A stretch of DNA of 64,000 nucleotides from Dimorphilus gyrociliatus (GCA_904063045.1 CAJFCJ010000024.1:925777-989776); one strand, 5' to 3'; shown: positions 23,268 through 44,600, counted from the first letter of the stretch. Translations and numbers: made by a program. Notes: generated by a model not told the origin, from the letters alone.

Positions 23268-25924
23268 ATGGACGAGGATTATCAGAATAGACCGAGTTGG
23301 ATTGATGCTAGAACTTGTTATAAGAAAGTCAAAAAGGTATATTATTTCATTTTTTAGGGCAATTTAGATCAGATAACCCTTTGTATTTGGTATATACCGC
23401 AAGAAATACTAACGTATTTGTCCAAATAAATAGCTAGAAACGGATAATCTTTCACAACAAAAGAAGAATCCTTTAGAGTCTATATTTTAAATATATAGAT
23501 GAGTATACATAATTATAGATGTTGATTGTATATACAGTATAACGTGCGTATATGAATAAAATAAGAGAGCCATAAAGGCTTACATTAAAATTGTATCTAT
23601 CTAGTTAAGTACACCTACCTTACCTTTAATAACGAAAATATCACATTCAGTAAAACATCTATAGAGAGCAAATAAATAAATAGATAATTGTAGAACTTTT
23701 CAAAGGTAATTAATCAACGTCAGTTAGTTGTAAAAATTGGGGAAAAAGTCAATTTATCTTTGGAAGTTGAAGACAAATTTTTAAAGTGTTTGTATTATTT
23801 GCTATAGTAGATGATGATTTGATGTATTTATTTATAATTTCAATGATATATGTTTGTATTTTCTCTCTCTCTCTCTTCCTTCTTTATAGCATTTATCATC
23901 TTTTTAATAGACTATTCTTTTCACATAAAATGGTCATTTCCTAAGACAAATGTATGTAATTCTAACAACAAAATACTTGTTTGCAACTGTTACTTTGAGC
24001 ATCTTCTTATTTTTTATTGCATCATTAAAAATATTAGATTTACTTAACGAAACATTTCTCGTTCCTCTCCAATAGAAAATTTTGGCAGAGAATGATAAGA
24101 AAGGGTTTAGGGAAGAGGGAGAAGAGCGAGACAGAAAGAGAGAGAGAAGAGAGAAAAAATGCTTTCAAGGACTTTTAGGCTATCTAATAGCTTTTCTTGT
24201 TTATCAATAGCAAACTCTACTTTTAACGTAGAAACGTGTTAAAGAAATTTTTTAGCTCATTTAACCTAATGCAAAGTAATAAATGGGTTAATATGAATAA
24301 ATAATAAAAGGTTTCATTTCAATACTCTATAGTTTTCATTGAAATAAAAGAATTCTTGAAAGTTAATTTGAGTTTTTAGAAGAAATAAGGTAGAAATTAT
24401 CGGTATACTTTTATACTTAATTGGTGTTTGTCTATGCTGATTGTAAAAACAAAGAAGGATTTCTAGGACCTATTTTCTTAATGGGTGGAAACGCGCGTAA
24501 AGAAAACTTTTACTTTTTGAGAAATAGACGCCAATTATCCGTGAAACTAGAGCACCTGCTTTAAAAAAGGAAATCGTTTTATAACGAGTCGTCTACGCGT
24601 GCGTCGCGGGGTCCTTTTTCACCTTTGAAGAGAACCGCCCCTGATTGACGGCTCCACCTGTTTATGCTAATTAGATATCTCTTTCAAATAGGGTCAAGTT
24701 GACGGTCAATCTTGCGGTTTATTTATAAGATGGAAACTACAAAGTATTTTCTTCTGTTTGGGCTATAACATTCAAAGACATTGTGGGAAAGTTCTCTTCA
24801 TTGGATTATTAATCTTCACCCTCTGCTCGCTTGGTCTGAGATTGATAAGAATTGATAAAGATCCAAAAAAATTATGGATTTCTCGTAAGTATATTTTATA
24901 TATTTGAAGTATATTAATTATGCAATAACAAGGCGATATAGGCCTAAAGGGATAAACATGAATTAATTAAAATTAAGGGAAAAAACACAACTAAAAGACA
25001 ATGTATTCTTTAAAAATATAAATTGTATATAATAGATGTCTTTTTCTGAAGTACTAAGCTACTTGTTTATGTCAGAATATTTAGGTTCTGTAGTATATAC
25101 TCTGCTAAAAACCGTATTAATAACATACATACATGCATATAAATTTATATATATATTAGGTCGATTTTTAAGTTTATTTTGAATGAAAAAAAGACAAAAT
25201 AAGGTCAACAAAAACCGTTCAAAAGGAATCTTATATTTTTTATTTTAAGTATACTTGTATATGTCGGATTATTCGAAACTTGATGTATTCTCTATATAGC
25301 AGACAAGAATAAAAATTGTTGATTTTAACGATGATATACGACAAAATATCTATTGAAAGGATCACGTTCATATATAGAAAAAAAGTAGTAAATTAAATAA
25401 CTTAAAAACTACATATAATAAAGAAAATGTTAAATTGTTTATTAAATATTATTAATAACATTATACAATTAAAAAATATAGTTCATCGCTTATCTATATT
25501 GAAATACGATAAGGATACAAATTGAAAAAGTTCCAAAGAAGTAGTGTCTTAAATAATTAGAATATTCATTTCAAGTACATACTCGACATTGTCAATGTAT
25601 TAATAATATTACCGATTTGAATGAAATTATAAGAGTTATTGAATAAACGACTTATGAATAAATATATTCTATAAATATTCATAAGATTAGTTATAAGTTA
25701 AAAAACAGGAAAGAGGATAGAATTAAAGTTCGTTGCAACTTTTCCTCTTGTGCATACAGTTGAACGTGTCAAATACATATGGTTTCTCACGTATGCAAAT
25801 TTTAAAAACATATATTTGCTTGCAGGAGATTAGTAATACTTAACAAAAGGTGTAAGATAATCATGATTCGTGATATTTGGGAGGATTTATTTTAATTTTT
25901 CCAATTCGTCTTTTATTCTTTCGA

Positions 25925-25969
<45 letters not shown>

Positions 25970-28900
25970 TTCTCATGTCTCTATTGAAATAGCGACTTAA
26001 ATATCAAAGTTTCTTGCGTAAAATAAAATTTATGGAGTACTTGAATTCTCTAGCGGTCGAAAGTTTTTTAGGTTTTTGGGGTATGGCCGCAGAAACAATA
26101 AAAAACTTCTTCTCGACCAGACGTTACAAAGTGTGAGAAAAAGAGCTAGACAGTGAGGGGCAGTTAGCAAAAACGAAGAGTAGAACGTAGTGGGGGGTAG
26201 GCTAGTGATTTAGATACTCTTTTTCTAGATGATACAGGAAAAGAGGCGTTTTTTTTTCTAGACCTAAGTTGACACACGCACTCCCTACCGTCCATTTATT
26301 TCGATACGGCTTACCAGTTCCAAACAATCCTAGCTTTTTTCTAAAGTATACACTCGAACGTGTCAGATGTATCGACCCGAAAGGGTAAATTGTTTGCATA
26401 GGCGGGGTCGGCCAAAAGGTTATGATACTCGACGCTCTCACACCTGCCACCATTTTTTCCTCTTCGTCAAACAAAAGAAAAATCTTTAACGTCGACACCA
26501 GCCAATTAAAATTTCCTATTCAAAACACTCTTTAAACATCCCTTTAGGGTGTTAAGTGAAAAATCCTGAGGATAAAAACGGGATAAATTCCTCTCTTCCG
26601 TTCTCTCCCCTCTCTGCGTCATACACATCCCTAGATGAAAAGAAGATGAAAAAGTTTCAAAATTCTATTTTTACTTAAATCGGATTAGTAATTTTATTTT
26701 CAAGTAGAAAGATTACATCATTACATAATAGCAGCATTAGCAACATCTCATTAACATTATGCTTTCATATTTTACAGCTTCCGGAAGAGTAGCGGAAGAA
26801 TTACGATACTCCGAAAAGTTCTTAAAAGACAGTGAAGGAGTAGATAGTCAATTTCTATTTCAGACCTCCGACAGCGACAATTTACTGTCTAAACGATCGT
26901 TATTATCCCATCTGGACGTCTTATTAAAAATAACCAACATTAAAGTCTCCCTATTTAACGAGTGAGTTTGCGTTTTCTATCTATACGTACAAATATTATT
27001 AGCTACATAGATATATCATGGGTCAAGTGGGAATTTTCTCTTAAGGTATTTTGTATCTGTAACCTTATATGCCTAAGGTGAACCTACTTTTTTTGTTGAA
27101 GGAGGCCACCCTCCATCTTTCTTTCTTTATTAAATCCTCTTCTCTAGTACTTTTCTCTTTATGCTATTTAAGCTACACAGAGCTTGATATATTTTCGTTT
27201 AACATTGTTTTCTATTTACACTTTGTCTTTTTACTTTCAGAGAATGGACTTTTGAAGATGTTTGTCATAGACACAGCTTTTATAACGGTCAAGAAGGAAG
27301 TAAACTGTTGAACAATATAATCGAAGGTTTAACTCCTTGTTCAATTGTGTCTATATTTGATTGTTTTTGGGAAGGAAGTAAAATATTAGGACCAACTCAT
27401 CCAGTTTATGTTCCTTCAACAATTTTTGGGTAAAAACCTCTTTATTTTTCTCTCTCTCTATCCGTAATATATTTCGTAGAAGAAGAAAAAATAAATAAAC
27501 ATATCTCTACGCTTACAAGACTTTAGATAAAAGTTTATTTATGGTTTTTCTAACCTAACAGACTTTTATTCGATCTACCACAAGAAATAACATGGAAAAA
27601 TCTTGATATTGATAAATTTATTAAAATATTGAAACTACACCATTTAGAAGGTTACGAAGCTTTGATCAGTTCGTTAAATAAGGTATATAAACTTTTGAAT
27701 TTTTCTTATTTTATCCAATTTTTATTGTAAATTGATAAAAAATAAAAATAATACCGCCTACTGTTCTTAGTCTGGTATTCGGAGCGGATACATAAACAAA
27801 CCATGTTTAGATAACACGGATTCGGAATGTCCAAATAGGAACGTTACGATAAATGCAAAGGAAGTTGTGGAATTAGAAACTTGTTCCGGCTTTGCCGAAA
27901 AGTTTATGGGTTGGAATAAGAAATTGTTAGTTAATGGAAAGTATGGCAGGTATGTTGAGTGTGTTGTTTTTCTTTTAGAGTAGATCTCTATAGGCTAAAT
28001 GTCTTATTGGTAGGGTTTTATGTTTTTACAAAAAATACTTTTCTAAGTTTGAACATTTATTTAAAAAGAGTAGTTTTAAAAAGGCGGGGATTATGGTTGT
28101 AACCTTAGATAAATTCTATTTATCGACTTTGACTTGCTCCAATTATTTCTAATAATTGGATTGAAGAACTATTGAATTTTAAAGGATTCATGAATACTTC
28201 ATTGTTATAAGACAATTTTTAAAGCTTTCGTTCTTCTTCTCTCATTCCTGCCTCCTTCTTATGCTCCCTTTCTTCTTTCGCCTCTTCTACTATTACATTT
28301 ACATACGCATTTTTAAAAGCAACAAGCACCTTCCCTTAACGTTATCTATTGCTTGTAAACAAACTTCCAGTACGGATTGAAGTCTGAAAATTGAATTATT
28401 GCCCATAAATAAGTTGATACAACGGTCGGTTAAAAATAATTGATAGCTGAATGAAAAAGTGGAAAAGGTGATAGGGTGAGGTATGCTGGGTCGTAAATTA
28501 TGCCTATAGACTAGTCGAGGTGACGTTTATTCGAAATTGAATTGGTTCTTTTGACGCCATTGAAATATTATAATTATTCCATTTTCAAGTGTAAACTAAT
28601 TAGAAGAGTATCTCGTTTTGGCGGGAAACGGGAGTCGGTCTAATTATAAGTCTTTCTCAATTAACTAGCCAGTGAACCGTATATGTTATTACCTCTTAAT
28701 AGTTCCGTCGCTGGGCACAGATCGTTTGTATAGATAATGACTTACTAAGGTCCTCTACTGTTACGAATTCAATGCCTTTATCTGGAATGGAGATCGAAGC
28801 AAAACACAACAAGCTTTCCACTGCCAAAATTAATAGGTTCCTCCTGAGACAACTTTTCCCCTATGATAAGAATATCTTTAAATTAATATGGGGACCAAGG

Positions 28901-31900
28901 TCAAAGAAAATAATATTATTCGAAAATTATCCAGACAGGCATTGACATATCTGGGCGGAAAAGGGCAGGTGTGCGTATGGCATATAAGTTTTAATAATAG
29001 ATTTTTGCAACGGCATGACACTTGTCGTCGTCTTGCGAAAGAATAATCGCATGCTGATAAAGCCGTAGCGGAAACAAGACTAACATGCTGGTAGGATTTA
29101 TTACCGGTCTACCGAAAATCGGACAATTTGAATGCTGGACTCTTTTGACAAGTAATAGCTGTCATACGTCCAACATCTTCCCGTTCAGTGTCTCCTCCCC
29201 TTTCCACCACTCCCACCGTCATTCCTATTGATAATCTGCCAAAACCGCCCCCTCCCTCCTTCCCCTCCTCCGACTCCTCCTTCTTCCCTTTCCTGGGAGG
29301 CCTACAAAACGACTTGTAGCTAACCAGATGTTATAAATTAAAGATATTATCTTACGAGAGAGGGAAAAAGAGAAAAATAATGAGAAAAACGGTCAGATTC
29401 CTAGCTAAAAACAAAATAATCTTGCAACACCTACAGATTATTTATAACCTTAATAAAAACGGTTGAAAATAACTTTTAGCATGGATTCTTCAATTTTATA
29501 GCCATATACTTTACTTTTACAAACACTATCTTATTTCTTATTATTATTGGTTTATCAATGTTTGTCAGTATATTTTGCGTTTATTATTCTAACACCAAAG
29601 TCCTTTCAACAACTTTAAAAGAGAATTAATAAAAGTAGGCGTTCAAGTAGAATTCCCTTGTGGCTATATGTTACTACCGGACATACAAAGAAGCGATCGT
29701 AGTCAAAGTAATTGATCCGATGGGTAATTTCCCGCTCTTCCGCCCATTTACTCTATTTTTATTCGAACGGAAGGAATGATTTTTTACCTGTTGTTAGTTT
29801 TTCTTTTTCCCCTTTCCTATGATTTGTCAAATTCTTTAATCTATTAGAATAAGAACTAAGAATAGGAAGAATTACAGATTATTTAACAACAGATATCTTA
29901 ACAACAAGTGTTAATAATTCTTTACATTGTTTGTCGAATCTATCTAAACTTTTTGATGTATAGATATTTATTTTAGCATACAATAATAGGCTTATTTCTT
30001 GGGAGATGATTTCTTTTGGTCTATCTGTCTTTCTTTTGTCTCTATAATATCTCTCTCTCCTCCATTCCTCTCCTTTACTTTAAAATCGTAAGACAACGTG
30101 GAAGAATCTTTATCGTTGTATTATTGATTGTATTGGAATAGCAAGACTATTGTTAAGATAAACTATGCTATTATATTTTGATTATCTTTACTGATGGATT
30201 TAAATGGTCAATTTCCAAACTGAAAGATTGGGAAGCTATACGAATTGAAAGAAATATAATAACATCTTTTTACAAAGAAGTCTTTCTTTCTCCTACAACT
30301 TCTTTTCAAGTTTAGCGCTCTTGCACCCAATTACGATACACTTTGTAAGAAAATAATTTACATATTCTCGACATCTAAGAGATTCTTATCTAACATTTTA
30401 TTCTTTAATCGCTTTGTTCAAAAATCGACTTTTTACCTTGAATTCCCTCCCACAGCTTCCCTTTTAACAAGTTATTTTAGGCCAGCTTCTTTTCCGATAG
30501 AAAAGAAAATTCTTTTTTCAACACTTTCTCCTGAAATCGAAAATATCTTGTTTATTATAAACAGTTTACAAGTGGAAAAATAAGGCCTAAGTTGCAAACA
30601 CTTTTATTATATATAGTGTTTAATATATTAACAGTGAAAGTAGACTGCGTCTTGTGTTCCTTATTTGGGACGAGAAAAATAAAAAGGGAAAAATGCTACA
30701 ACCCCTATATAACTATATATTAAGACCTTCGTCAATCAAATCTTTGAATAGGAATAAATTTCTCCACCTTCTATTATTTCTAAGTAGTTTGAATTCAATT
30801 ACTCTGAGGAATCTGTCTAGCCTTTTTATATTTATTAATATACTTTCATTGATGACTCGCAGGGGACTATTTTCTCTTAATTATTTTCTTGATAATTGAC
30901 TGGTACTTGAAAATGATTTGATTAGCCGAAATGTCACTTGAATTGTAAATATTGTTTTATAAATATATTGTGTATAAAGTCTCACTTTATCGGATATTAT
31001 ATCAAATATATTGAAATCGATTTGAAGATTTTTAACATTTCAGCAACATTGATTAAAATAGCAGAAATAATGAATTCCGAAAGGAAATGGTAGCTAATAT
31101 TAAATATATATACAGTATGTTTGGCATATTTCTTTCTTTTCTCCCTTATCATTGACATATTTCAAATAAATTTAAAGATAGAAATAATAATTCCTTGGGC
31201 GATTTTCACCGCCCACTTCCCCCGCCCATTTTCCCTCAGATAAAGTATAAAATGTTCAATAACAATAGAATCACAACAATTTCGAAAGGAACTAAAATTT
31301 TATTTCTCTTCTTATCAGCCTTTTAAGGGCTTAAGTAGTTTTATCAAAAAAAAAAAACTTGTAGGCTTTACTTCATTTTTCTTTTTTGGTGAAATATTAT
31401 GGACAGATGCCATCCTTTTCCCTGGAGCGTGATTATTATCATTCCCGTTTGGGACATGTTATACACAGACCACATGTCTTAAAATGTTTGCGTTCTTGAT
31501 GTTTTATCTCAAGATTGAGGTTTATTTTTGACAATGTCGAAATAATTTCTTTTTCCTTGTCCTCTATATAAACTTTTCACTACGAACGATTAATAATAGA
31601 CCAGCTAATTACCTATGGTGATAATTGACCCTTTTCCATCCCTTTTTCGCACCTTCTACCTTTTCCGACAACTTCCGCACTTTGAAAAAGAAAATGAGAA
31701 AGAAAAAAAACATCTGGATTTCTTTAAAAGTGAAAAGAGTAAAAAATAGAAAGGGGTGGAGGGGGAGAGATGATGAATTTCTGAAAATGTGCAGCATTTA
31801 TCATTTTAGTATATACTATAAAAAGCTTAAAATCATAATCTGATCTTCTTATTCCTTTCCGCTCTTAAAAGATTAGTAGTTGAACTAGTGCTTGAAATTT

Positions 31901-34900
31901 TCATAGATAAAAAGAGAAATTGAGCCTAACTAATGGATATTCAAAAGTTAACAATAAAAAATAAAAGATTTTGCCTCATATTGTTAAATAACTTTAAAAA
32001 GTTCTTGCGATCTTTCACTATTGCGGCTGGGAACAATCAACTAATTACTTACGTATCAAAGAGCTGTTTACAAAAATATTAAGTAGAGAGGGGGCGAAGC
32101 GAAAACTTGTAAGGGGAGAAGGTGAAGAAATGAAAGCGACCCCGATCTAAGGATATTTTCAATTTATGCTGAGGTTTATTAGGAGGAGGTTTAAAATTGT
32201 TGACGTAGTTTTATTCTTGTTTGATGTTGAGGAAGAAAACTAGCCCTTTAGGTGTTATGTTCCATTTTATATAAATCCCCCCTTTTATACTAATGTAAAT
32301 GGGAACAGATGACGATATAATCCGAGGGGCTGCCTTGATTGCCATCAGGTTGTATAGTTTGTGACCACTAAAATTGGAGTAAATGCATGCCACATGCCTA
32401 TGAAAACACAGGGAACCCTTTCTTTTATTTTAATAGGCCTAGCTGCCCAGTGTAAAATTTATTACCCCAATTGAATGAATAAAGAAAGAGACGTAACACT
32501 AAAAATGACCCGTGACTTGAATTTTATATTGGGCGTCAAACCGTCAGTTTTAAATTAAACATGAGTGTTTACGGCGCTCCAATTCTATTTCTAGAGTAGG
32601 CCTATTTAGTAGTCGAAATTTATTCCCGCGGGTGGTCCACCGCGTTTATTGACTAGATATGAGATATCCCGCCCGCAAGCGCGCGCCTATACAATGCGTG
32701 TGGTCTTTTATTAAAAACATAGGCCAATTTTTTGAACAGATATATCCTTAGGCCTAATTTAATTCTACGTTTATCTTTTTTGAACAGAACAAAGGCATTG
32801 CAATCAATCATTCATTTAATGGGACCCGAATATTTGTTTAATTATCACGATAGTACACAAAAGACCCAAAAGAATATGGAGAAATGGACAATGAAGGAAG
32901 CAGAAATGGTTCTAGCCAAATGGCATTTGGAAATGAAAAAAATTATCAATAACGAATCTACAAAGTTTTATATACTCACTTCAGACGATTTCGACGGAAT
33001 TGTCGAAGAATTTTGTAAAATCCCAATAGAGGGCGTAGCAATAGCCTATTCTTTGTGGGTAAGCGAAATATTTCCCATTTTTCAAACCCTACATAGGCGT
33101 CTAATTTAAGTAGCAATTAACAAACGAATAGATGATAAGAATGTCACAAACATATTGTGTATATTATGTACATATATACTGCATGTAACGACATCTATTA
33201 TCAGCTTAAGAAAAGAATTTGCCTACTTTCAATATTCAGTTAAGGACGTTAATCATAAATGATAATTCTGTTGAAAAACAATAGAATTCCTGTAGTGTCT
33301 TCTCTCCGCTTTAGTTCTTTTTATTTTTATCTAAGATACAAAAAAAACAGCGAAAAAAAATCAAAAAAAGTATCTTTACAAATAAGGTGCTATTGAAATC
33401 GAGCAATCAATTGAAAATAGGGGAGGAGGAGGGATAAAGAGAAAGAAATAGACAGAAGGGAGAACGAGAGAAAAAGATAGATAGAAGAAAATTAGAATTT
33501 GAGCAGATAGAGGGGTAAAAAAAAACTTTTACATCCTAACACCTAATCTATATATCTACTGTATATACTTTATACTATATATATATATATATTCTTACTT
33601 CTACTTCAATGATTAATTGACAATGCGCTCGTAATTAATAATGGAAAACTAAATTGCTCTTTTTTTAATTACAGATTATCTACTCTATTTTAATTAATCT
33701 CAGTCGAAATAAGAAATTAGCTCTGTCTCAAATATCTTTAAGTGTCTCCTCTATACTTATTATACTACTTAGTACAGCCTCAGCTTTAGGCCTATGTTGT
33801 GTCTTTGGTCTTGATTTGAACGCTCTAACGTTTCAGGTACAGTAAACTTTTTAGTATTAAACAATATTTATATATACATTAATTATATTATCATTATGTA
33901 TATATGCATAGATCATATTTCATAAACATTTACATAAATCCTTATAACGTGTATTGTTATCATATCAAGTATTTCTAAACGTTTTGCCTTTCTCTCTCCT
34001 TGTCTCTCTTTGAACTCTCTCTATTTCTTGAGAATAGCAAATATTTGATAAAAAGAAAATTGAGAGAGTCAAAAAGTATTTCTTAAGGAAAGTGATAGAA
34101 TGTGATTTTGTTTAATTCTTTCTATGTTTATTCTAGTCAATTTATCATCAAGAGTAAAGAGAAATTCTTTAATTCTTTTTCATCTATTTTCCCCATACAG
34201 CTGCTACCGTTTATTATAGTTGGAGCAAATTACGAACATATTATACTATTTTTACAAACTTATAAAGAAGTTTGTAGGAGCGATGTAGAATTTAGTGATA
34301 AAATAGGTCATGTAATGAAGAGATGCTCGTTGGATATTGTTCTTCCAATCGTTTGCAATTATTCTATATTGTTCGTCATCTATTTTGTATTCAATGCAAC
34401 GGCTATCGGACATTTTATACTTCAGGTAAAAGATGAAACATTTTAGATTGTTTACGTAATCATTCCTTTATACATAACTCTAAACTAAACATCTCCTTTT
34501 CAGCTTGGTATTGTAATTTTAATGAATCTAATTGGATTGTGTATAGTTCTACCGTCAATTATGAGCCTCGATCTACAAAAGCGATTAAACGAAAATCTGA
34601 CACAGCGGTCCGATTGCAATCATGTTTGTGTCCAAATTCCAAATTGTTCCAAAGATAAGTCCAACTCTTGTACGGATACCTATGGAGCGTTCCTTGAGAG
34701 GAGAAATATACAAATATTAATTATAATTTGCCTTTCAATGGCTATCGTCGTTGGAATCTTAGGAATTTTAAGGATTTCCGTTGGCATGAATATTTTAGAC
34801 TTTTCGAAAAAAGGAAGTGACCGGTACGAAGCACTTAAAACGAGGGAAACTCATTTTCCTAACTATTATACGCATATCATTACTACCGATGATTTTGATT

Positions 34901-37369
34901 ATACGTCTCCTTATAATCAAAAATTAATGTTTCAACTCGAAGAAGAGCTTTCAGAGGTTAAGGGCGTCGTTCAATCTAATAGAACATTCTGGTTGAGATC
35001 ATTCAGAGACTGGTTGCAAGGTTTGTTCATTTTTCCTTTTTGAACGAGAGAAGGCTTTAACAAAGGGGGAAGGAAAGTAGATTTCTATTGAAAGGGGTGC
35101 GAAAGACGTTTTGAGTACTACCCTTTTCTTTACAGAATTAAAGAGTTACTGCACATAGCTTAATGGACTTTTTAAATAAAAAATAGGTACTCAAATAAAA
35201 GAACGGACTAATGGGTAGGGAAGGGTTAGAAAAAACTTGTAACAATTCTATTGTCGCCACTCTATTCACACTTTATCATGGTCACTCTTCCATAATTTTT
35301 ATCCGTTTTCTTTAAATAGGCCTACAGAGGATATTCAACAAGGAGAAGCATATATTTAGAAAAGCTATCAAGAGTAGCCCTCGCAATATTCCCGAATGGT
35401 CAACAAATATGTCTTACGATGGTATAGTTGCTTTTAAACTATTAGGACAAACACCAACGAGATTTAGATCAAAGAAAGCTCTAACGACTAAGTTGGTGAG
35501 AGATGGAATAATTAATCCCAAATTGTTTTACAAACTACTGAGTGCCTGGACTTCCGAGAATTTACTGGCCTATTCGTTCTCTGAAGCGCAACTAAAACCC
35601 GAACCAAAGGAATGGAAGAACGACTATCGAAATGATGATTGCGAAGGTAAAAGAGAAATAGATAAAATAGCGGTAGTAATCTCAACTAAAATGTTACGTA
35701 ATAGTTTTATTGACAAGAAACAAATAAGAAATTTATTTACACATGTTAAAATTACATTTAACAAATAACAGATTAAATAGGGATTAGCTGTATTATCTTA
35801 TAAATAGGATTTAAATTAAATAAGTAATAAAATAGAGGGTATTAATAGCATTTATAAAATTCTATTTTGCTAATTTTCCTTCTTTATTCTGTTATATTCA
35901 TGTTTTTCTTTTTCGAACAGTGCAAAAATCAAAACCTTTAGCGTTTAGCCAAATGCCACTCTTAATGAGTTTTACCAACGAAGATGATATTCTGCCAAGC
36001 TTATCTAGAATTAGAGAAATATGTGAAAAATATACCTCAATGGGAATTACATCATTTCCAAAAGGAGAATTATTTACCTACTTGGACGATCTTCACAATC
36101 TTAAATTAAAAATTATCGTCGCTTTTGGGGCCTGCTTAGTAGTTCTATCAGTAATAATTACACTCTTTCTTATGCAACTATGGTTTGCAGCTGTATTGGT
36201 TTGTATAAGAGTTTTCTTTAAACAGAACACCCCTTTTTAATAACGTTTACCTTTATTTTAGACCTCAACTTTATTGTTTATTTACGTAGAAATTCTAGGA
36301 TTCTCTGGAATAATTAATCTCAAATTGAACGGCATATCGGCCGTTATAATGCTTACAACATTCTTATTCGTGTTGCCATCGGTTCTACGTTTCTTTATTG
36401 TAAGTAAATTCTTTAATTTGGCAAGTTAAAGAATAGAATGTATAAAAGTAATATAAATAAAGAACTCTTGATATAATTTTTAACTGATTAAGCAGATTGA
36501 TAACATGATTGTTTCTTATCGTTTAATTTATACATATGTATATGTGTCAGCGATTTAGAGTATACTGTATAGTTAACTTTCACAATGTTATATAGACTAC
36601 GTAGGGTATTTTACAGGCTATAATTGTTTTTTTTTATCCTTTATAGGCTTATGTAACGAATATTGGAACTAGAACGGAAAGGTTAAAGTTAACTTTACAA
36701 CAATTTTTACCAGTATACGTAAAGTATATATTGGGATTTCTGTTTGTACTTCTAGTCATTATTTTTACGCATTTCATCTTTATATTCAAGTAAGTTGAAT
36801 GATGGATAATAGATAAATTTGATAACGGATTAACTAATTCTCTTCCTTCTTTCCTCTCTCTTCTTTTTTGACAGATATTTCTTCATCTTGTATATTTTGG
36901 CTATTCTATTTCTAAGCTCGAATCTCTTGGTTACTATACCTGTTATATTATATTTAATAAATCCAAGGGCTCAGATTGAATTGGGTGATGAGCCTATGCC
37001 AAAACCGTCTCCTATGTTACCAAAACCTCGTAAAAAACCTCCCAAGGACTACGATAAGAAAAACCTAAGTACAATTACTGAAGAATCTAGTCACGCTGGT
37101 AGTGATAGTCAAATAAATAATAAATCTTGCCGGGTATTCGTTAGTACCCGGGCTACTCCTGTAAGTAATTAGTAAAACTTGCTGTTTATTTATTCTAAAT
37201 AACCTTTTATAATATAAATATTTTCATCTTTCTTAAATAGATACACAATTCGAATAATAACGAAAATTTTTCAACTAAAACTACCGATCAAGGTAACAAA
37301 AGCCAAAGGATGGCTTTAATAAAAACAACCACAGAAGTAACTGTAGAAGTGCATCAAAGTGACGATTAA
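23268..37369 (+). CDS. ptc: Patched (Hedgehog receptor, RND/SSD family), divergent; 1,136 aa, 16 exons (23268-23336, 24692-24884, 26778-26961, 27241-27429, 27562-27682, 27771-27949, 32788-33058, 33675-33836, 34201-34425, 34504-35020, 35320-35646, 35921-36198, 36262-36399, 36647-36789, 36875-37160, 37241-37369)
   Basis: Patched-type motifs in order: RPSWIDA, LGYNIQRHCGKVLFIGLL, GRVAEELRY, PCSIVSIFDCFWEGSKILGP, GYINKPCL..CP, FWLRSFRDWLQGLQ, DGIVAFKLL, FSQMP..ICEKY..G..FPKG, and C-tail LSTITEE and TEVTVEVH. All 15 introns are GT-AG with compatible phases, and the 3,411 nt total is divisible by 3. Confidence 0.93.
25929..25960. repeat. (TC)16 microsatellite in patched intron 2
   Basis: Pure TC run. 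Confidence 0.95.
32629..32637 (-). promoter_or_regulatory. Candidate Gli/Ci binding site in patched intron 6
   Basis: Minus strand GACCACCCG (8/9 match). A second variant, GACCACACG, lies at 32697-32705 in the same GC-rich patch. Confidence 0.55.
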
Positions 37370-38634
37370 ACTATTTTGTATTTATCTGTGATGCTTTTGG
37401 TGCTATTAAAATAAAATAAAGATTAAAAAAGTAATAGAATTGTATTTAATTTATCTCGATTTTCAATTGATAAACATAACAATAGAGTTGTTGTAAAGGA
37501 GAATATTTGTTTACCGAATTTTTCGGATGATACTGACAAGAATATAAGTTTATCTATAGTTAATTTTGTTTTACTTTTTACTCTTAAAGTATCCATCTTG
37601 ATAAGTGTCTTTCTCTCTCTCTCTCTCTCCCTCAATCTTCCGTACACCTTTTCTCCTATTTTATTCTTTTATACAACATTCCCTACCATTCGAATATTGT
37701 CCTCTCTTTTCATATTTCAAATGTAAATATCTACTCGTATTGTTTTCTTTCTTTCAATATTAACTTTGACTGTAAAAGATATAAACCTTGGCAATTAACT
37801 AATTATGAATATTTGTATTTGATATTTAATATATTAGTATTTACGAAAGCGTAAATAAGGGTTTGTTATCATCTATCAAAACCATTTCAAGCACTACTTG
37901 TAATATAGGTGAATATTTTTGCAAGTGCAACTTTTACTTACAGTACTAGCTACGCCATCTATAACCTCTTCTTTAATTCAATAGTCGAGTGCGTTGGAAG
38001 AGATTTATTATTTACACAATTTTAAGGTGACTGACTGGAAACAATTGTTTCCCCAAAACCACACCTCTGAAAAGCCTAAATTCTTCAAAACCATATTGAT
38101 CACGAGCATTTTGTGTCTGGACAGCTATCGAAGGTGTACAAAGCTATCGTCATTTACTTCTAGTTCTAAACTCTAGTCTTCTATTTCAAAATAGGTTAGT
38201 AAAAGCTAATTAAAATGTCTTATTATTTCTAATTAACAAACCAATCATATGTTACAATTATTTTTAGGAGAGAAGAAATAAGAAAATGGAAAAACGTTTG
38301 TTTTTTCATATTTTTTCCATAGTTCTGCAATAGAATAACATTTAATGTAAAGAGAAAAATATTAATATAGTAACTAATTATGAATTTTATAGTGCATAGT
38401 CCTAATTAACAATTACATTTAAATATCATTTAGATAAGTTTTCACATAAGTGTTTTTGCTTTCTTATTATCCATTTTTTGATGATTTTTTTTAATATGTC
38501 TATATTAATATATAATGTATTGTTGTCTACATTCTTTATAGACCATTAAAGTCAGTAAAGGCATTGTTTCAATTGTTTCAAAATTCAATTGTCTATAAAA
38601 AGTAAGAGTACATTATTTATCGTTAATTCTATAG

Positions 38635-41600
38635 GCTTTGGAAAGAAATTTCTTAGGCCAACAATTCTAGACGAAATCCATAAAATCTTTCAAAAATACC
38701 CATACGATGGTGGTATTTTAAAGGTAATTTCAATTAATTTCTCTACTATTTCTAACTTAATATCATATTCTAATAATTGCAGGAAATGATTCAGAATGCT
38801 GAAGATGCAGGAGCTAAAAATGTTAGTTTCATTTTTGATTGCAGAACATTTGATAAGAAATCGAGCTACGAAACCAATGAACAAGCTTCACTTCAACAAC
38901 TTCGTTCCATTGTTTCTTTTAATGATGCTCGTGTTACTGCAGAAGATTGGAAAGGCATACAATCAGTTGGTCTTAGTAATAAGGACAAGAAAGCTTATAA
39001 AGTTGGTAGATTTGGTTTAGGAATGAAGTCTCTTTTTCATTTAACAGGTTAAACTCATTTTTAATCTCTTTTAAGAGAAATAACGATATAAACATTTTGC
39101 AGACTGCATACAAATTATAAGCGGAGAAGATGTTTTATATCTTGATCCTTCATGCAAGTATTTCAAAGACGAAATTCATCATTATGATCTTTCAGAAATG
39201 CTTTCGAAATGCCCTGAAAAGAAAAGGGAGCTTGAGGAAGCTAGCAAATTAGTAGCCGATTATGATACCCGCTATAATGAAGATTATCCATTTACTATGT
39301 TTCGTTTACCATTAAGAAATCAACCATCTGATGTATCTGATCGAGTTCTTTCCGATTCAGATATTATTGAATTATTTGACCAGTTTATCGAAGATGGATC
39401 TAATAATCTGTTGTTTCTTAAATATCTGCAATCTATCAGACTGTATCGGCTTTCAGATTCGGGATCGGCACTACTTTGTAGCATAGAAATTACACTAACT
39501 GAAAATATTCAAAGACAAAGATTAATTTACAGAGAAAGTCTGGAAAATTCTAAACCATTTCAAATATGCTATGATTCTTGTTTCATCATACAAAATGGAA
39601 CAACAAGGAAAGTTGAGAGATATCTTGTTGTAGTTCAACAAAATTTCGATAATTCTGATATTAAAACACTATCAAATAAACTTCACTATCAACCTTGTGT
39701 GGGTTTAGCCGTTCCCCTTGATCATTCCCTTTTAGGGGAAGGATCATTGTTTACCTTTCTTCCATGTAGTACAAATATAGCATATCCTATTCATATTCAT
39801 GGATATTTTGCTTTAAATGATAGTCGATCTGGTCTGAAATTCTCAAAGATAATGAATGATGACGATTCGAAATGGAACATTTTAATGCTTAAACATCTAC
39901 TACCGAAAGTTTACAATCAATTATTTACTTCTCTGTCGGAGTATAAATCAGTTGATAAAATCATTGAATTTTTCCCACCTAGTTCTTCAAATGATCCTCT
40001 CTGGTTGATAAGTTCAAATGAAATAATCTCTAACCTACTTAGTTGTAAATTCATATCGGGTTCATTGAAAAAAACAACACCCATAAATACTAAATTTATT
40101 ATCGATGATGAATATGCTCAATTTAAAATTGAAATTCTAAAAGCTTCGAATGAAAACTTCGTCGTTCTTAACAAAGAAACTCTACAGACGTTGCGAACTT
40201 TTTTCAAAGGCCATTTCGTATGTGAAGTTCAAATAAAAGAAGTAATTCTTCAGTTACAGGCACGGAACTGTTGGAAAAACTTTATATCGGCTAAAACAAA
40301 AATAGGGATTCTTGAATATCTATTAGATTTAAATTTGGATGTCTCAAACTTGGAGCTTCTTCCAGTAAAAGATTCAAAATCTAATGTATCTTTCAGTACA
40401 TTTAAAAGGCATATTTTCTATAATTACATCTATTATCCATCAAACAACTTAGATGTAATACTGAATGGCGTGGGAATTGATTTTATTGCAGCAAATTCTT
40501 TAACAGAAAAATGTAAAAGACTAATTGAAGATATGGCTCTTAAACAGAATTATCAGCTTAGAAATATGGATATCTCTAAATTCCTATCATACGTAGAGCA
40601 TATGGAAGAAGAGTTTCAGGATCATTCGTGGCTGGAACTATTTATCAACTATATATTAAAAGAGCGCCTTAGTATCGTTACAGGAAAATTTGATAACTTG
40701 CCTGTGATAAGACTAACAACTAATGGAAAAGATTTTAAGAGCTATGCAGTAAAAAATCTTCCAGCTATTTTTGACGAAGCAATAGAAAGAAGAGTTGATA
40801 AAAACATTTTACAAGCATTTGGTATAATATTGGTTAAGAGTGTGTCAAAAATATCTATACCTTTTTTGAACATAAGAAAATCCAATAACAATCCTATTAT
40901 ATTCAATAATGTTTGCGAAAGATTGTTTCAAAATTTATTCTCCAGTGATTTTGTAAACACAGGTCAACATTTATCAAATTTGTTTGGTAAAATGAACAAT
41001 CCAAAAGCAAGCGACGTATTAAACTATCTTTCTTCCAATGTTAAAAGTATACAAGCACTATCTGCAAAGATACAAGTTCAATGGGAAGGACTAAAAATAT
41101 TTCCCCAATACGAAAGGGACATATATGTTTCGTCCACTTTAACTAATCAATTTATAGAGTGTGTTCCCTTTCCAACAAAAGTAGACCTAATTAAAAAATG
41201 TGACGAAGTTGAAACACTTAAACATGTTTTCGGTCTGGAAGAGATATCCATACCTATGCTACTTTTCTTGAAAGTAATTCCTAGCATTCCTGACAAGTAT
41301 AATACAAAGGAAATAGTTGAAATCATACAATATGCTTTTCAGAATTATCAAGCTAATGCAGTGAAAAAATATATCATAAATAGAAGAATTTTTCCAGCGG
41401 CAAACTTTACATGTAAATTACTAGATGAACTCTACAGCTTTGATGTTTCCTTCCCCTGTAAACTAAGAGAGGAAGCAACGTTATCCAACTATTTTTTGCA
41501 CCCCAATTTAAGGGAATTTGAAGAGATATTAAGCGAAATTGGTCTAAAGTCAACTCTAAGTGAAGAGCTTTTGATTAAACTTTTTCAATATGTTGTAAGA

Positions 41601-44600
41601 AATAATGACTTTGCTTTAAGTAAAAGTCTTCAAAATTACATAATTAAAAAGAATATATCAATTAATTCAGAATTAAAGTGGATAAGTGATATTGAAATTC
41701 ACCCTGAAAATTATCCCAATGGGATTAATTGGTTTGGTGGGAAGAAATGTCTGTATGATCGACATTCTGTTTTTAGTGATAATCATTCCTTGTTGGTTGG
41801 AGGTGTAAAACCAGTTATTCCTGACAAGCTCTACCATTTGTTAAATTGTGATTCTACTTTGTCGTTTGACATTGTAAATAAGCAATTTCAAGTTCTCCAG
41901 TTACAAATACGTCAATTAAGAGGCAAAAATATGGAAAAAGCGGAAAACATAATCAAAATACTTTACAAACAGATTAATGCCTCTAATGATTGGGTGTCCG
42001 AGTTCAAGGACCAACAATGTGCCTGGACAGGAAAGGAATTTGTTCATCCTACAAAATTCATTATAAATAATGGAAATATTCAACTAGAACCCTATCGATT
42101 CTATATTCCCAATAATTTTGTAGAATTCAAAGAATTCTATTTAAAATGCGATGCAAAAGAAGACCTGGATTGTATAAATGTAAGTTTCTACCTTTTTCAT
42201 ATTAATATCTGTGCTAAATTTTCATACAACCTTAAATTAGGTACTAATAGATATCAGTAAAAATCCGCCTTCAAGCTGTAAAAATGGTATTCGCATATGT
42301 TCAGATATTTTGAACTCTATTCAAGATACTAATTCCTACGAATTAAAGGATATAATGATTCCAGTGGAAACAACAGATTCATGTACTTTTTCTATGAAAC
42401 CGCTGAGCAGATGTACACAAGCAGCTATTTCAAACTTTACTGGAGTAGACGATGATTGTTACATCATAGAATTTGACGAAAATAGATTCAGTTACATTCT
42501 TCATAATCAACTAAGACTTAGCGAGGATACAAAAAATATATTAGATATTCGTTCCATGAATGAATCTTTATTGGAATTTGAAGACTGGACTCAATCCGAA
42601 GATTTATGTCGTAGATTGAAACAATTGATTTCAGAATATAAAGATGGAATTGGGCCAATTAAAGAGCTTATACAAAATGCTGATGATGCTAGAGCAACAA
42701 CCGTCAAAATCATGTTCGATGAAAGATCCTCATCTATTAAAGACGAAAGCAAATATTTTATCGGTCCATCCGTTTGGGTTTATAATGATGGACTATTCAG
42801 TGAAAGTGATTTTGACGCAGTTAAATCTATAAATTCTGGCCACAAAGAATTGAAAAAGTCAACAATCGGAAAATTTGGTATTGGATTTAATTCCGTATAT
42901 CATTATACAGAAACACCGTCATTTATATCGGGTAACAACTATGTTCGATTTGATCCCCATGCTCAGTACTCTGGAAGCCTTTCAAAGAAACAAAGAGGAG
43001 GTTATCGAATAAAATTGGATGAATCCAAATTAAAACCATTAAAGAGATTACTATCACCTTTTGAAGGAATATTTGGTTGTAAAGTTCCATCACAATGTAG
43101 ATTTGATGGAACGCTATTTAGACTTCAATTGAGAAGTCGTGAACAAGCTTTTCAATCTTTAATTTCTAAAATATCATACGATTCCGAAAATATAGAAGAA
43201 CTAATACAGATTGTACTTAATTTCTCTAGTGATCTTCTTCTATTTACCCAATGTATATGCGAATTTCAAATGTTTCATATAAATGCTTCAGGAGGCATAA
43301 AGGAAATTATTAATATGAAAAAAACACTTGGCAATGCGCTTAATACGAAAGCTCTTCAAATTGAAAAAATACCGAAATGCTTAAGGGAAAAAACAAATTA
43401 TATCGAAGTAATACAACATGCAAATGTCTTATTGGATAACTATGATTCACAAACAGTAGTCTTGATAAACATAGATAAGAAGGTGGGTTCGGCTTTTAAG
43501 TATTTGAACAAAGGTGAAGGTGACGAATCATATCAATGGATTATTGGACAAAACAAAATTACAAATGTCTTACCAGAACTGGAGGAGAGAGGAAGCGTAG
43601 CTATTGGGGGAGTTGCAATTTGCTTATCAGAGAATGTTTCATATGACAATTCCCTGTATTGTTTCTTGCCGCTTCCTATTTCTACGGACCTTCCTTTCCA
43701 TTTGAATGGATCATTTGCGACATCACATGATCGAAGAAATATTATTAGAAATACTAAAGGAGATAGACATGTAATTGAACATGAATGGAATAAATTGCTC
43801 TTTGAAAGAGTAATTCCGTTAGCTCTAAAAGATACTTTTTCTGCAATAAAAACAATAATTATAAATGGTGAAAGCTGTAGATGGTACGAGCTATTTCCGA
43901 CGTTAAATGTTTATACTGATCACTTTATTGAAAAACTCATTCGAATTTTTTATAGAGAAATGATTAAATCTTCTGATGGCTGGTTTATCTTTCAGATGAA
44001 CTGGTATGAACCAAATGATATACGTTTCTTAAGTGAGGAACTATACAAATTGGAAGAACTTACAAATATTGATTTAGACACTATTGCATTTGATCTATTT
44101 GAACTGCCATTTCCTAAATTGCCTATGAGTTTACGAAACACTATTGAAAAATGCGAAGAAGAATACTTTATGAACAGAGTAATTGATACCAAAACGTTTT
44201 ATTCGAGTCTTGTGGAGAACAGTGATTCAATTAACAGCAAACATTTTGATTTGATTATTAAAAGTGGTCTTGAACAATTTCCTTCAACGATAAGTGACAT
44301 ATTGGAACGATCGAAGTGTATAAGAACAAAACCAAATGGTATTTTAAAATTACCTAAAGAAGTTGTTTTGGAAAATTCTGAATTATCGCCCCTCTTCGAT
44401 TTTGAAGAGAATCGATTTTGTGATTGGGATAAAGAAGACGTCGAAAGTGTGAAAACTGAACTTTCTGCTATTGGAATCATATCTACTAAACTTAGTGTAG
44501 AACAAATTATTGAAAGATGTAAGGTATTTGAGGAGAATAGAAAAGATCCAGACTTTATTAATAGAGGACATTTGATATGTTCAGTTATTCACAAAACACA

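Follow-up and report, generated by a model that had tools for sequence, protein, structure and literature searches.

An altered TM4/TM10 cation site in a highly derived, transcribed Patched of the annelid Dimorphilus gyrociliatus

Introduction

How Patched restrains Smoothened is still debated, and the model in which it acts as an ion-coupled sterol pump leans largely on the acidic triad of the vertebrate protein, formed in PTCH1 by D513 and D514 in transmembrane segment 4 (TM4) and by E1095 in TM10. Here we describe a Patched (Ptc) gene of the annelid Dimorphilus gyrociliatus in which only one of these three positions carries an acid. The gene lies at 23268-37369 on the plus strand of a 64,000-nucleotide stretch of AT-rich eukaryotic DNA (GCA_904063045.1 CAJFCJ010000024.1:925777-989776; GC content about 30%), which we call the window and from whose first letter all positions are counted. 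A first-pass annotation of the window had proposed that this Patched has lost the triad and may be transport-dead, acting as a Hedgehog-binding sink or decoy, or may use a rewired mechanism.

The closest well-described system is vertebrate PTCH1 (6DMY, 6OEU, 6E1H and others), whose twelve-TM RND-like layout, two large ectodomains and sterol-sensing domain the annelid protein shares. In simulations of PTCH1, Na+ and K+ are coordinated by D513, D514 and E1095 together with the V510 backbone and T551 (PMC9949057). In the literature the motif of the family is defined as GxxxD/E, and the TM4 copy is the essential one (PMC3078328). The triad is nevertheless far from universal in natural Patched proteins, as the gene described here and a census of its relatives indicate; the fly protein, founding member of the family, has one acid. 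TRA-2, likewise a member of the Patched family, works without the full GxxxD/E pair. The same is true of Caenorhabditis elegans DAF-6/PTR-7 and most PTR proteins (PMC3078328), which are Ptr/PTCHD-branch or nematode-specific proteins and not orthologues of the Hedgehog receptor, whereas the annelid protein groups with spiralian Ptc.

Results

Residue states at the cation site

TM4 of the annelid protein reads GANYEH in place of GVGVDD in PTCH1, that is, D513E and D514H. This follows from a HMMER alignment of the TM4 exon to human PTCH1 499-573 that is gapless across the motif (E=0.007 for the exon alone, with PTCH1 as the top match) and that places Glu468 (34234-34236) at D513 and His469 (34237-34239) at D514. 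The same alignment puts Gln at H520, Asp501 at S547 and Pro505 at T551. TM10 reads FLFVLPSVLR, which gives E1095P, G1091L, G1093V and H1099R. Three L-INS-i alignments agree on this register, running ungapped over 34 residues between the anchors LKLNGIS / IKLSAVP and AYVTNIG / AFLTAIG. A faster FFT alignment puts gaps into the TM10 segment, and the assignment of Pro944 to E1095 therefore leans on the anchors at either side and the equal length between them rather than on any strong similarity within the segment; the TM10 exon alone had no matches in the PDB.

The first-pass annotation was right about these details. The window does contain its TM4 and TM10 peptides, its coordinates 34201 and 36399 coincide exactly with the ends of exons, and the splice it made over 36400-36646 (a GT..AG intron of 247 bp joining the TM9-10 exon, 36262-36399, to 36647) is correct. 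We also find, as it did, Glu, His and Pro (the last at 36376-36378) at the three triad positions, so that the vertebrate-type acidic triad is not intact. What is left is one of the three acids, Glu468, along with His469, Arg948 and Asp501 in TM5. Because D513E leaves a carboxylate at 513, the GxxxD/E motif of TM4 survives as G-A-N-Y-E, with Gly at 509 and Glu at 513; the TM10 stretch, L-F-V-L-P, does not conform to it.

Relative to PTCH1, the annelid protein carries D513E, D514H, E1095P, G1091L, G1093V, T551P, H520Q and H1099R and has a short cytoplasmic loop and tail. It keeps G509, P504/F505, the six invariant cysteines of the first ectodomain (ECD1) and the Asp of the sterol-sensing domain at the D599 position. 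From the equal spacing of motifs in fly and worm Ptc, we take this last residue to be the site of the fly ptc-S2 mutation D584N. We had also considered D584 as the GxxxD aspartate of the fly and ruled this out: that aspartate lies near residue 504, and D584 is a separate Asp of the sterol-sensing domain (human D599), so that we draw no argument about the cation site from D584N.

Identity and phylogenetic placement

Judged from its sequence, the gene is a true Ptc, the Patched Hedgehog-receptor orthologue of a dinophilid-type annelid. Three of its ectodomain or loop exons match PTCH1 and nothing else among 177,635 PDB sequences (E 1e-12 to 7e-12), which bears out the earlier statement that both ectodomains remain recognisable; they are of the Ptc type, as opposed to that of NPC1, Dispatched or PTCHD. 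The alignment of the protein with canonical Ptc spans its full length, with twelve TM segments arranged as 1+5 twice and big loops after TM1 and TM7; a hydropathy scan finds most of the TM segments where they are aligned, TM12 not being called. In the TM4-5 exon Pfam PF12349 recognises the sterol-sensing domain (TM2-TM6) at 25.7 bits, and in the TM2-3 exon at 22.1 bits (cut-off 22.3). These scores are low because the scan was run exon by exon, and the lack of any Pfam match on single short ectodomain exons is uninformative given exon length.

In a tree made up of Ptc sequences only (PTCHD, Disp and NPC1 not serving as outgroups), built under the site-heterogeneous LG+C20 PMSF model with other long branches removed, the protein is nested among spiralian Ptc with SH-aLRT support of 96. 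A first tree that included the other long branches had paired it with a tardigrade; after the rebuild without them under the mixture model we read this pairing as long-branch attraction. The highest identity to any canonical Ptc is 33%, to that of the annelid Owenia. When the longest exon was scanned against 1.84 billion representative proteins, it found one close relative, a 201-aa genomic open reading frame (ORF) with 74% identity; the next Ptc matches came only at E 1e-11 or weaker, which marks this Ptc as very divergent.

The terminal branch measures 3.68 against a median of 0.44 in the spiralian clade, about eightfold, and such a length is typical of a released duplicate. A canonical ptc elsewhere in the genome could then do the standard job, leaving this copy free for a new or partial function. 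We consider this unlikely. The one close relative of the longest exon in the large scan is the orthologue from a related species, and the best 120 matches to a mollusc query and to an annelid query included no canonical Ptc labelled Dimorphilus or evidently related, although this second argument is weak in that expected annelids were also missing there. Two Logan proteins nearest the annelid query came from unrelated recent runs and were set aside.

Transcription, splicing and selection

The complete Patched gene is transcribed, its splicing is correct, and it evolves under strong purifying selection. It has 16 coding exons for 1136 aa; the spliced ORF of 1136 codons has no internal stop and ends in a stop codon at 37367-37369, and all 15 modelled introns are GT..AG. 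Logan contigs from four runs of two studies were placed on 31500-37400. They cover exons only and so are RNA assemblies, which shows both transcription and splicing of the gene. Nine of the 15 introns, including those that flank the TM4 exon and the TM10 exon, are confirmed by GT..AG joints in these contigs, each in all four runs and with zero differing letters. For a tenth (27949 -> 32788) the support comes from RNA contigs of four runs, through a loose end.

Genomic contigs from four runs carry the orthologue of a related species, which is not Dimorphilus gyrociliatus itself. It has the same exon structure across seven exons and keeps GANYEH, the Gln at the H520 position, D-I-V-L-P in TM5 and VLPSVLR in TM10. 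The two proteins are 76% identical, with a ratio of nonsynonymous to synonymous substitution rates (dN/dS) of about 0.09, at saturated dS, over 587 codons. Broken down by part, dN/dS is 0.05-0.09 in the TM exons and 0.13-0.19 in the ectodomain exons, so that, in the comparison of the two species, no part of the gene is more constrained than the membrane exons, which argues against their being a mere anchor. The derived state is old, fixed and maintained.

These results bear directly on the idea that the locus is a decaying pseudogene or an assembly artefact, in favour of which there is only the extreme divergence. The intact ORF with its 15 GT..AG introns, identical spliced contigs in four runs from two studies and the low dN/dS against a second species refute it, and we regard it as scarcely credible.

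Triad states across Patched proteins

We tabulated the three positions in 296 Ptc proteins, each 900 aa or longer, from our searches, 288 of them scorable; the sample is biased towards the queries, and its counts are not population frequencies. At least one triad acid is missing in 121 of the 288. The full D / D / E set (in the order 513/514/1095) occurs in 163 proteins. Several bivalves have N / D / E, spiders N / N / E, Varroa N / S / E and a copepod D / A / Gln. Termites and many other insects have D / D / His, Hymenoptera H / D / His and Lepidoptera Q / D / His, His being the state at 1095 in most insects; Anopheles (P0266) has D / H / Gly, and seven Drosophila species (P0269-P0275) have D / H / Cys, with TM4 reading GLGVDH. 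Ixodes, an aphid, a tardigrade and a clade of about 35 proteins that groups with an eriophyoid mite have no acid at TM4 or 1095. Since Drosophila and most insects lack an acid at 1095, the TM10 acid does not define the family.

One TM4 carboxylate followed by His, with no acid in TM10, is on these alignments the pattern of fly Patched itself, the fly having Cys where the annelid has Pro. The two differ in that the fly keeps Asp513, G1091 and T551, for which the annelid has Glu, Leu and Pro. Glu at 513 occurs in one other sampled protein only.

The mite-affiliated clade (P0002, P0007, P0014, P0018, P0028/P0227, P0050 and P0234-P0263, from Logan, ENA and JGI assemblies) lacks an acid at 513 and 514 and, in all but one protein, at 1095, and nearly all its members have Glu at the T551 position. 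This clade and the tardigrade Paramacrobiotus (XP_055339601.1) resemble the annelid protein as fast-evolving Ptc orthologues that have lost triad acids. However, they lack any TM4 acid and keep Gly1091, whereas the annelid keeps the TM4 Glu and has lost Gly1091. The losses in the mite clade, the tardigrade and this annelid are independent events in different phyla.

In the mite-affiliated clade the TM5 Glu stands at the T551 position; in the annelid an Asp stands one turn away, at 547, a state shared with only one other of the 296 proteins. An acid at 547 or 551 is present in 33 proteins, all without a TM4 acid and nearly all from the mite-affiliated clade with Glu551, and in none of the 240 scorable ones in which a TM4 acid is kept; the annelid Patched combines Asp at 547 with Glu at 513. 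Since T551 is an ion contact in the simulations of PTCH1, a relocated site could be served by a carboxylate in TM5, and Glu551 of the mite-affiliated clade may be a relocated coupling carboxylate. Re-siting to TM5 would represent one or two evolutionary events and is only a lead.

Erosion of the membrane core

A set of 141 alignment columns that are invariant across 20 canonical Ptc, ranging from cnidarians to mammals, allowed the ectodomains (ECD) to be compared with the transmembrane domain (TMD, here TM2-6 plus TM8-12). The annelid Patched keeps 68% of these invariants in the ECD and 42% in the TMD. The corresponding values are 100% and 69% in Drosophila, 80% and 56% in the tardigrade, and 82% and 39% in the mite-affiliated clade. 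That the TMD erodes faster than the ECD is thus a general trait of fast-evolving Ptc, functional ones included, with the annelid protein at the extreme.

A rival explanation, and the main idea of the first-pass annotation, is that the core no longer couples ions to sterol movement and that the protein serves to bind, sequester or endocytose Hedgehog, or signals without a pump. The contrast between the two domains, the TM10 segment without acid and without either glycine, Pro at T551 and Gln at H520 would all fit such a transport-dead receptor. There are precedents as well: the mouse PTCH1 triple mutant D499N/D500N/E1081Q (NNQ) is inactive yet retains ShhN binding (10.1101/352443), DAF-6/PTR-7 of C. 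elegans does its work with no TM4 motif and no permease activity, and of the 26 worm PTC/PTR proteins just 7 carry the two motifs together (PMC3078328). However, the annelid protein keeps a Glu at the key TM4 position, fly Ptc functions with D / H / Cys, and the TM exons have the lowest dN/dS of the gene. The better retention of ectodomain invariants is also seen in the functional fly protein and is hence not diagnostic of a dead one. We regard a transport-dead receptor as possible, if on the unlikely side.

The proposal of the first-pass annotation that this Patched may be transport-dead therefore stands only in part: the triad is altered, but a carboxylate remains at 513, Drosophila sets a precedent, and the membrane exons are the most constrained. 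Nearly the same substitutions do occur in functional Ptc orthologues, although in arthropods and bivalves and not in close relatives. The rewired mechanism that it offered as an alternative fits the data at least as well as a decoy.

Discussion

The reading that we favour, to which we would give about an even chance, is that this gene encodes the sole or principal Ptc of the animal, highly derived but working, with a reduced or re-sited ion site. Very fast protein evolution in the lineage has remodelled the central TM4/TM10 cation site. One carboxylate has stayed at the key GxxxD/E position as Glu468, the second TM4 acid is His as in Drosophila, and the TM10 motif is erased, with Leu and Val for its two glycines and Pro for its Glu. 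Thr551 has been replaced by Pro, with a new Asp501 one helical turn away in TM5, and His1099 by Arg. On this reading the protein would still receive Hedgehog, and its membrane domain would have some activity on which selection acts, most likely the handling of sterol, coupled to an ion site that is reduced or re-sited, as must also hold for fly Patched. Transport, Hedgehog binding and control of Smoothened by this Patched are all predicted properties. We do not think, given the pattern of conservation, that it is an inert decoy.

Several observations weigh against a working protein of this kind. Of the five groups in contact with Na+ in simulations of PTCH1 (D513, D514, V510, E1095 and T551), four are altered here, and the loss of activity in the NNQ mutant and in PTCH1 D513Y (PMC9949057) shows that the cation site matters in PTCH1. 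Pro at 1095 was found in no other sampled protein. Gly1091, which is Leu here, is present in 288 of the 296 other Ptc, including every lineage without a triad. The TMD core is, together with that of one mite clade, the most eroded in the sample, and the low dN/dS of the TM exons may perhaps reflect just a requirement for hydrophobicity.

It is tempting to speculate further that dinophilid annelids have uncoupled Hedgehog reception from ion-driven sterol pumping, either with Glu468 and Asp501 replacing the triad or with the site abolished altogether, the TM10 motif being erased in both cases. The residue pattern would permit this, but we think it quite unlikely. If true, nature would have run an experiment on what Patched requires for the control of Smoothened.

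Even the near-universal TM10 glycine is dispensable in this annelid while the gene stays under strong selection. Natural variants such as these tell which residues the mechanism really needs, and they are ready-made constructs for rescue assays. The Dimorphilus genome study, paper and supplements, does not mention Patched or Hedgehog and says only that all developmental pathways are retained; on the Patched result, the Hedgehog pathway departs from the "conservative" character that has been claimed for the compact genome of this worm.

Gene model and neighbouring features

Coordinates are collected in Table 1. The five exons just 5' of the 4838-bp intron (exons 2 to 6) were modelled from splice sites and reading frame, and the ATG exon (exon 1) from homology to the conserved N-terminal motif. 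One RNA contig (X2) has 1005 nt upstream of 32785, which leaves room for exon 1 and about 73 nt of 5' untranslated region.

Table 1. Exons of the Patched gene and residues discussed in the text (plus strand, positions in the window).
Feature	Position	Strand	Evidence and remarks
Exon 1	23268..23336	+	ATG + 23 codons with conserved N-terminal RPSW.DA motif; tblastn with Ptc N-termini; GT donor after 23336; phase 0 into 24692
Exon 2, TM1	24692..24884	+	tblastn match to PTCH1 TM1, E=1e-11; AG/GT sites and frame consistent
Exon 3, ECD1 start	26778..26961	+	splice sites, frame; intact spliced ORF
Exon 4, ECD1 with DCFWEG motif	27241..27429	+	splice sites, frame; intact spliced ORF
Exon 5, ECD1	27562..27682	+	splice sites, frame; intact spliced ORF
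Exon 6, ECD1, followed by 4838-bp intron	27771..27949	+	27949 -> 32788 junction from loose contig end, four runs
Exon 7, ECD1 end and TM2	32788..33058	+	RNA contig joints
Exon 8, TM2-TM3 of sterol-sensing domain	33675..33836	+	RNA joints; Pfam Sterol-sensing 22.1 bits (cut-off 22.3), Patched 18.5 (cut-off 23)
Exon 9, TM4-TM5 with GANYEH	34201..34425	+	RNA joints; HMMER to PTCH1 499-573; PF12349 25.7 bits, over cut-off 22.3
Codons GAA CAT, Glu468 and His469 (PTCH1 D513, D514 positions)	34234..34239	+	alignments; identical in related species
TM5 D-I-V-L-P, Asp501 (S547 position) and Pro505 (T551 position)	34333..34347	+	alignments; kept in related species
Exon 10, TM6, cytoplasmic loop, TM7, ECD2 start; kept sterol-sensing-domain Asp (D599 position)	34504..35020	+	RNA joints; PTCH1 match E=1.2e-12
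Exon 11, ECD2	35320..35646	+	RNA joints; PTCH1 sole match, E=7e-12
Exon 12, ECD2 end and TM8	35921..36198	+	RNA joints; PTCH1 sole match, E=3e-12
Exon 13, TM9 and first part of TM10	36262..36399	+	RNA joints; 41/46 residues identical in related species
TM10 core L-F-V-L-P-S-V-L-R: Leu940 (G1091), Val942 (G1093), Pro944 (E1095, 36376-36378), Arg948 (H1099)	36364..36390	+	ungapped anchored alignment
Exon 14, TM10 end and TM11	36647..36789	+	RNA joints
Exon 15, TM12 and cytoplasmic tail	36875..37160	+	RNA joints
Exon 16, tail end	37241..37369	+	stop 37367-37369; RNA joint 37160 -> 37241 bypasses the in-frame stop that ends the genomic ORF

Besides the sixth intron (27950-32787), two others in Patched are long, measuring 1355 and 1893 bp. 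In this genome the published median intron is 66 bp, and long introns have been linked to open-chromatin peaks (PMC7854359). The long introns of Patched may hold candidate regulatory elements. Within the 4.8-kb intron, a contig over 32306-32642 reveals a cryptic acceptor at about 32306-32308 that is spliced to exon 6. It was seen in one run, at a depth of 3.7 against about 106, and as a stop follows after two codons in frame, it is a minor unproductive isoform or splicing noise.

Downstream, the next gene (38777-42260 and beyond, plus strand) begins about 1.4 kb past the Patched stop. It opens with a HATPase-like motif (QNAEDAGA) followed by an open exon of 1020 codons, and has the appearance of a sacsin-type giant protein.

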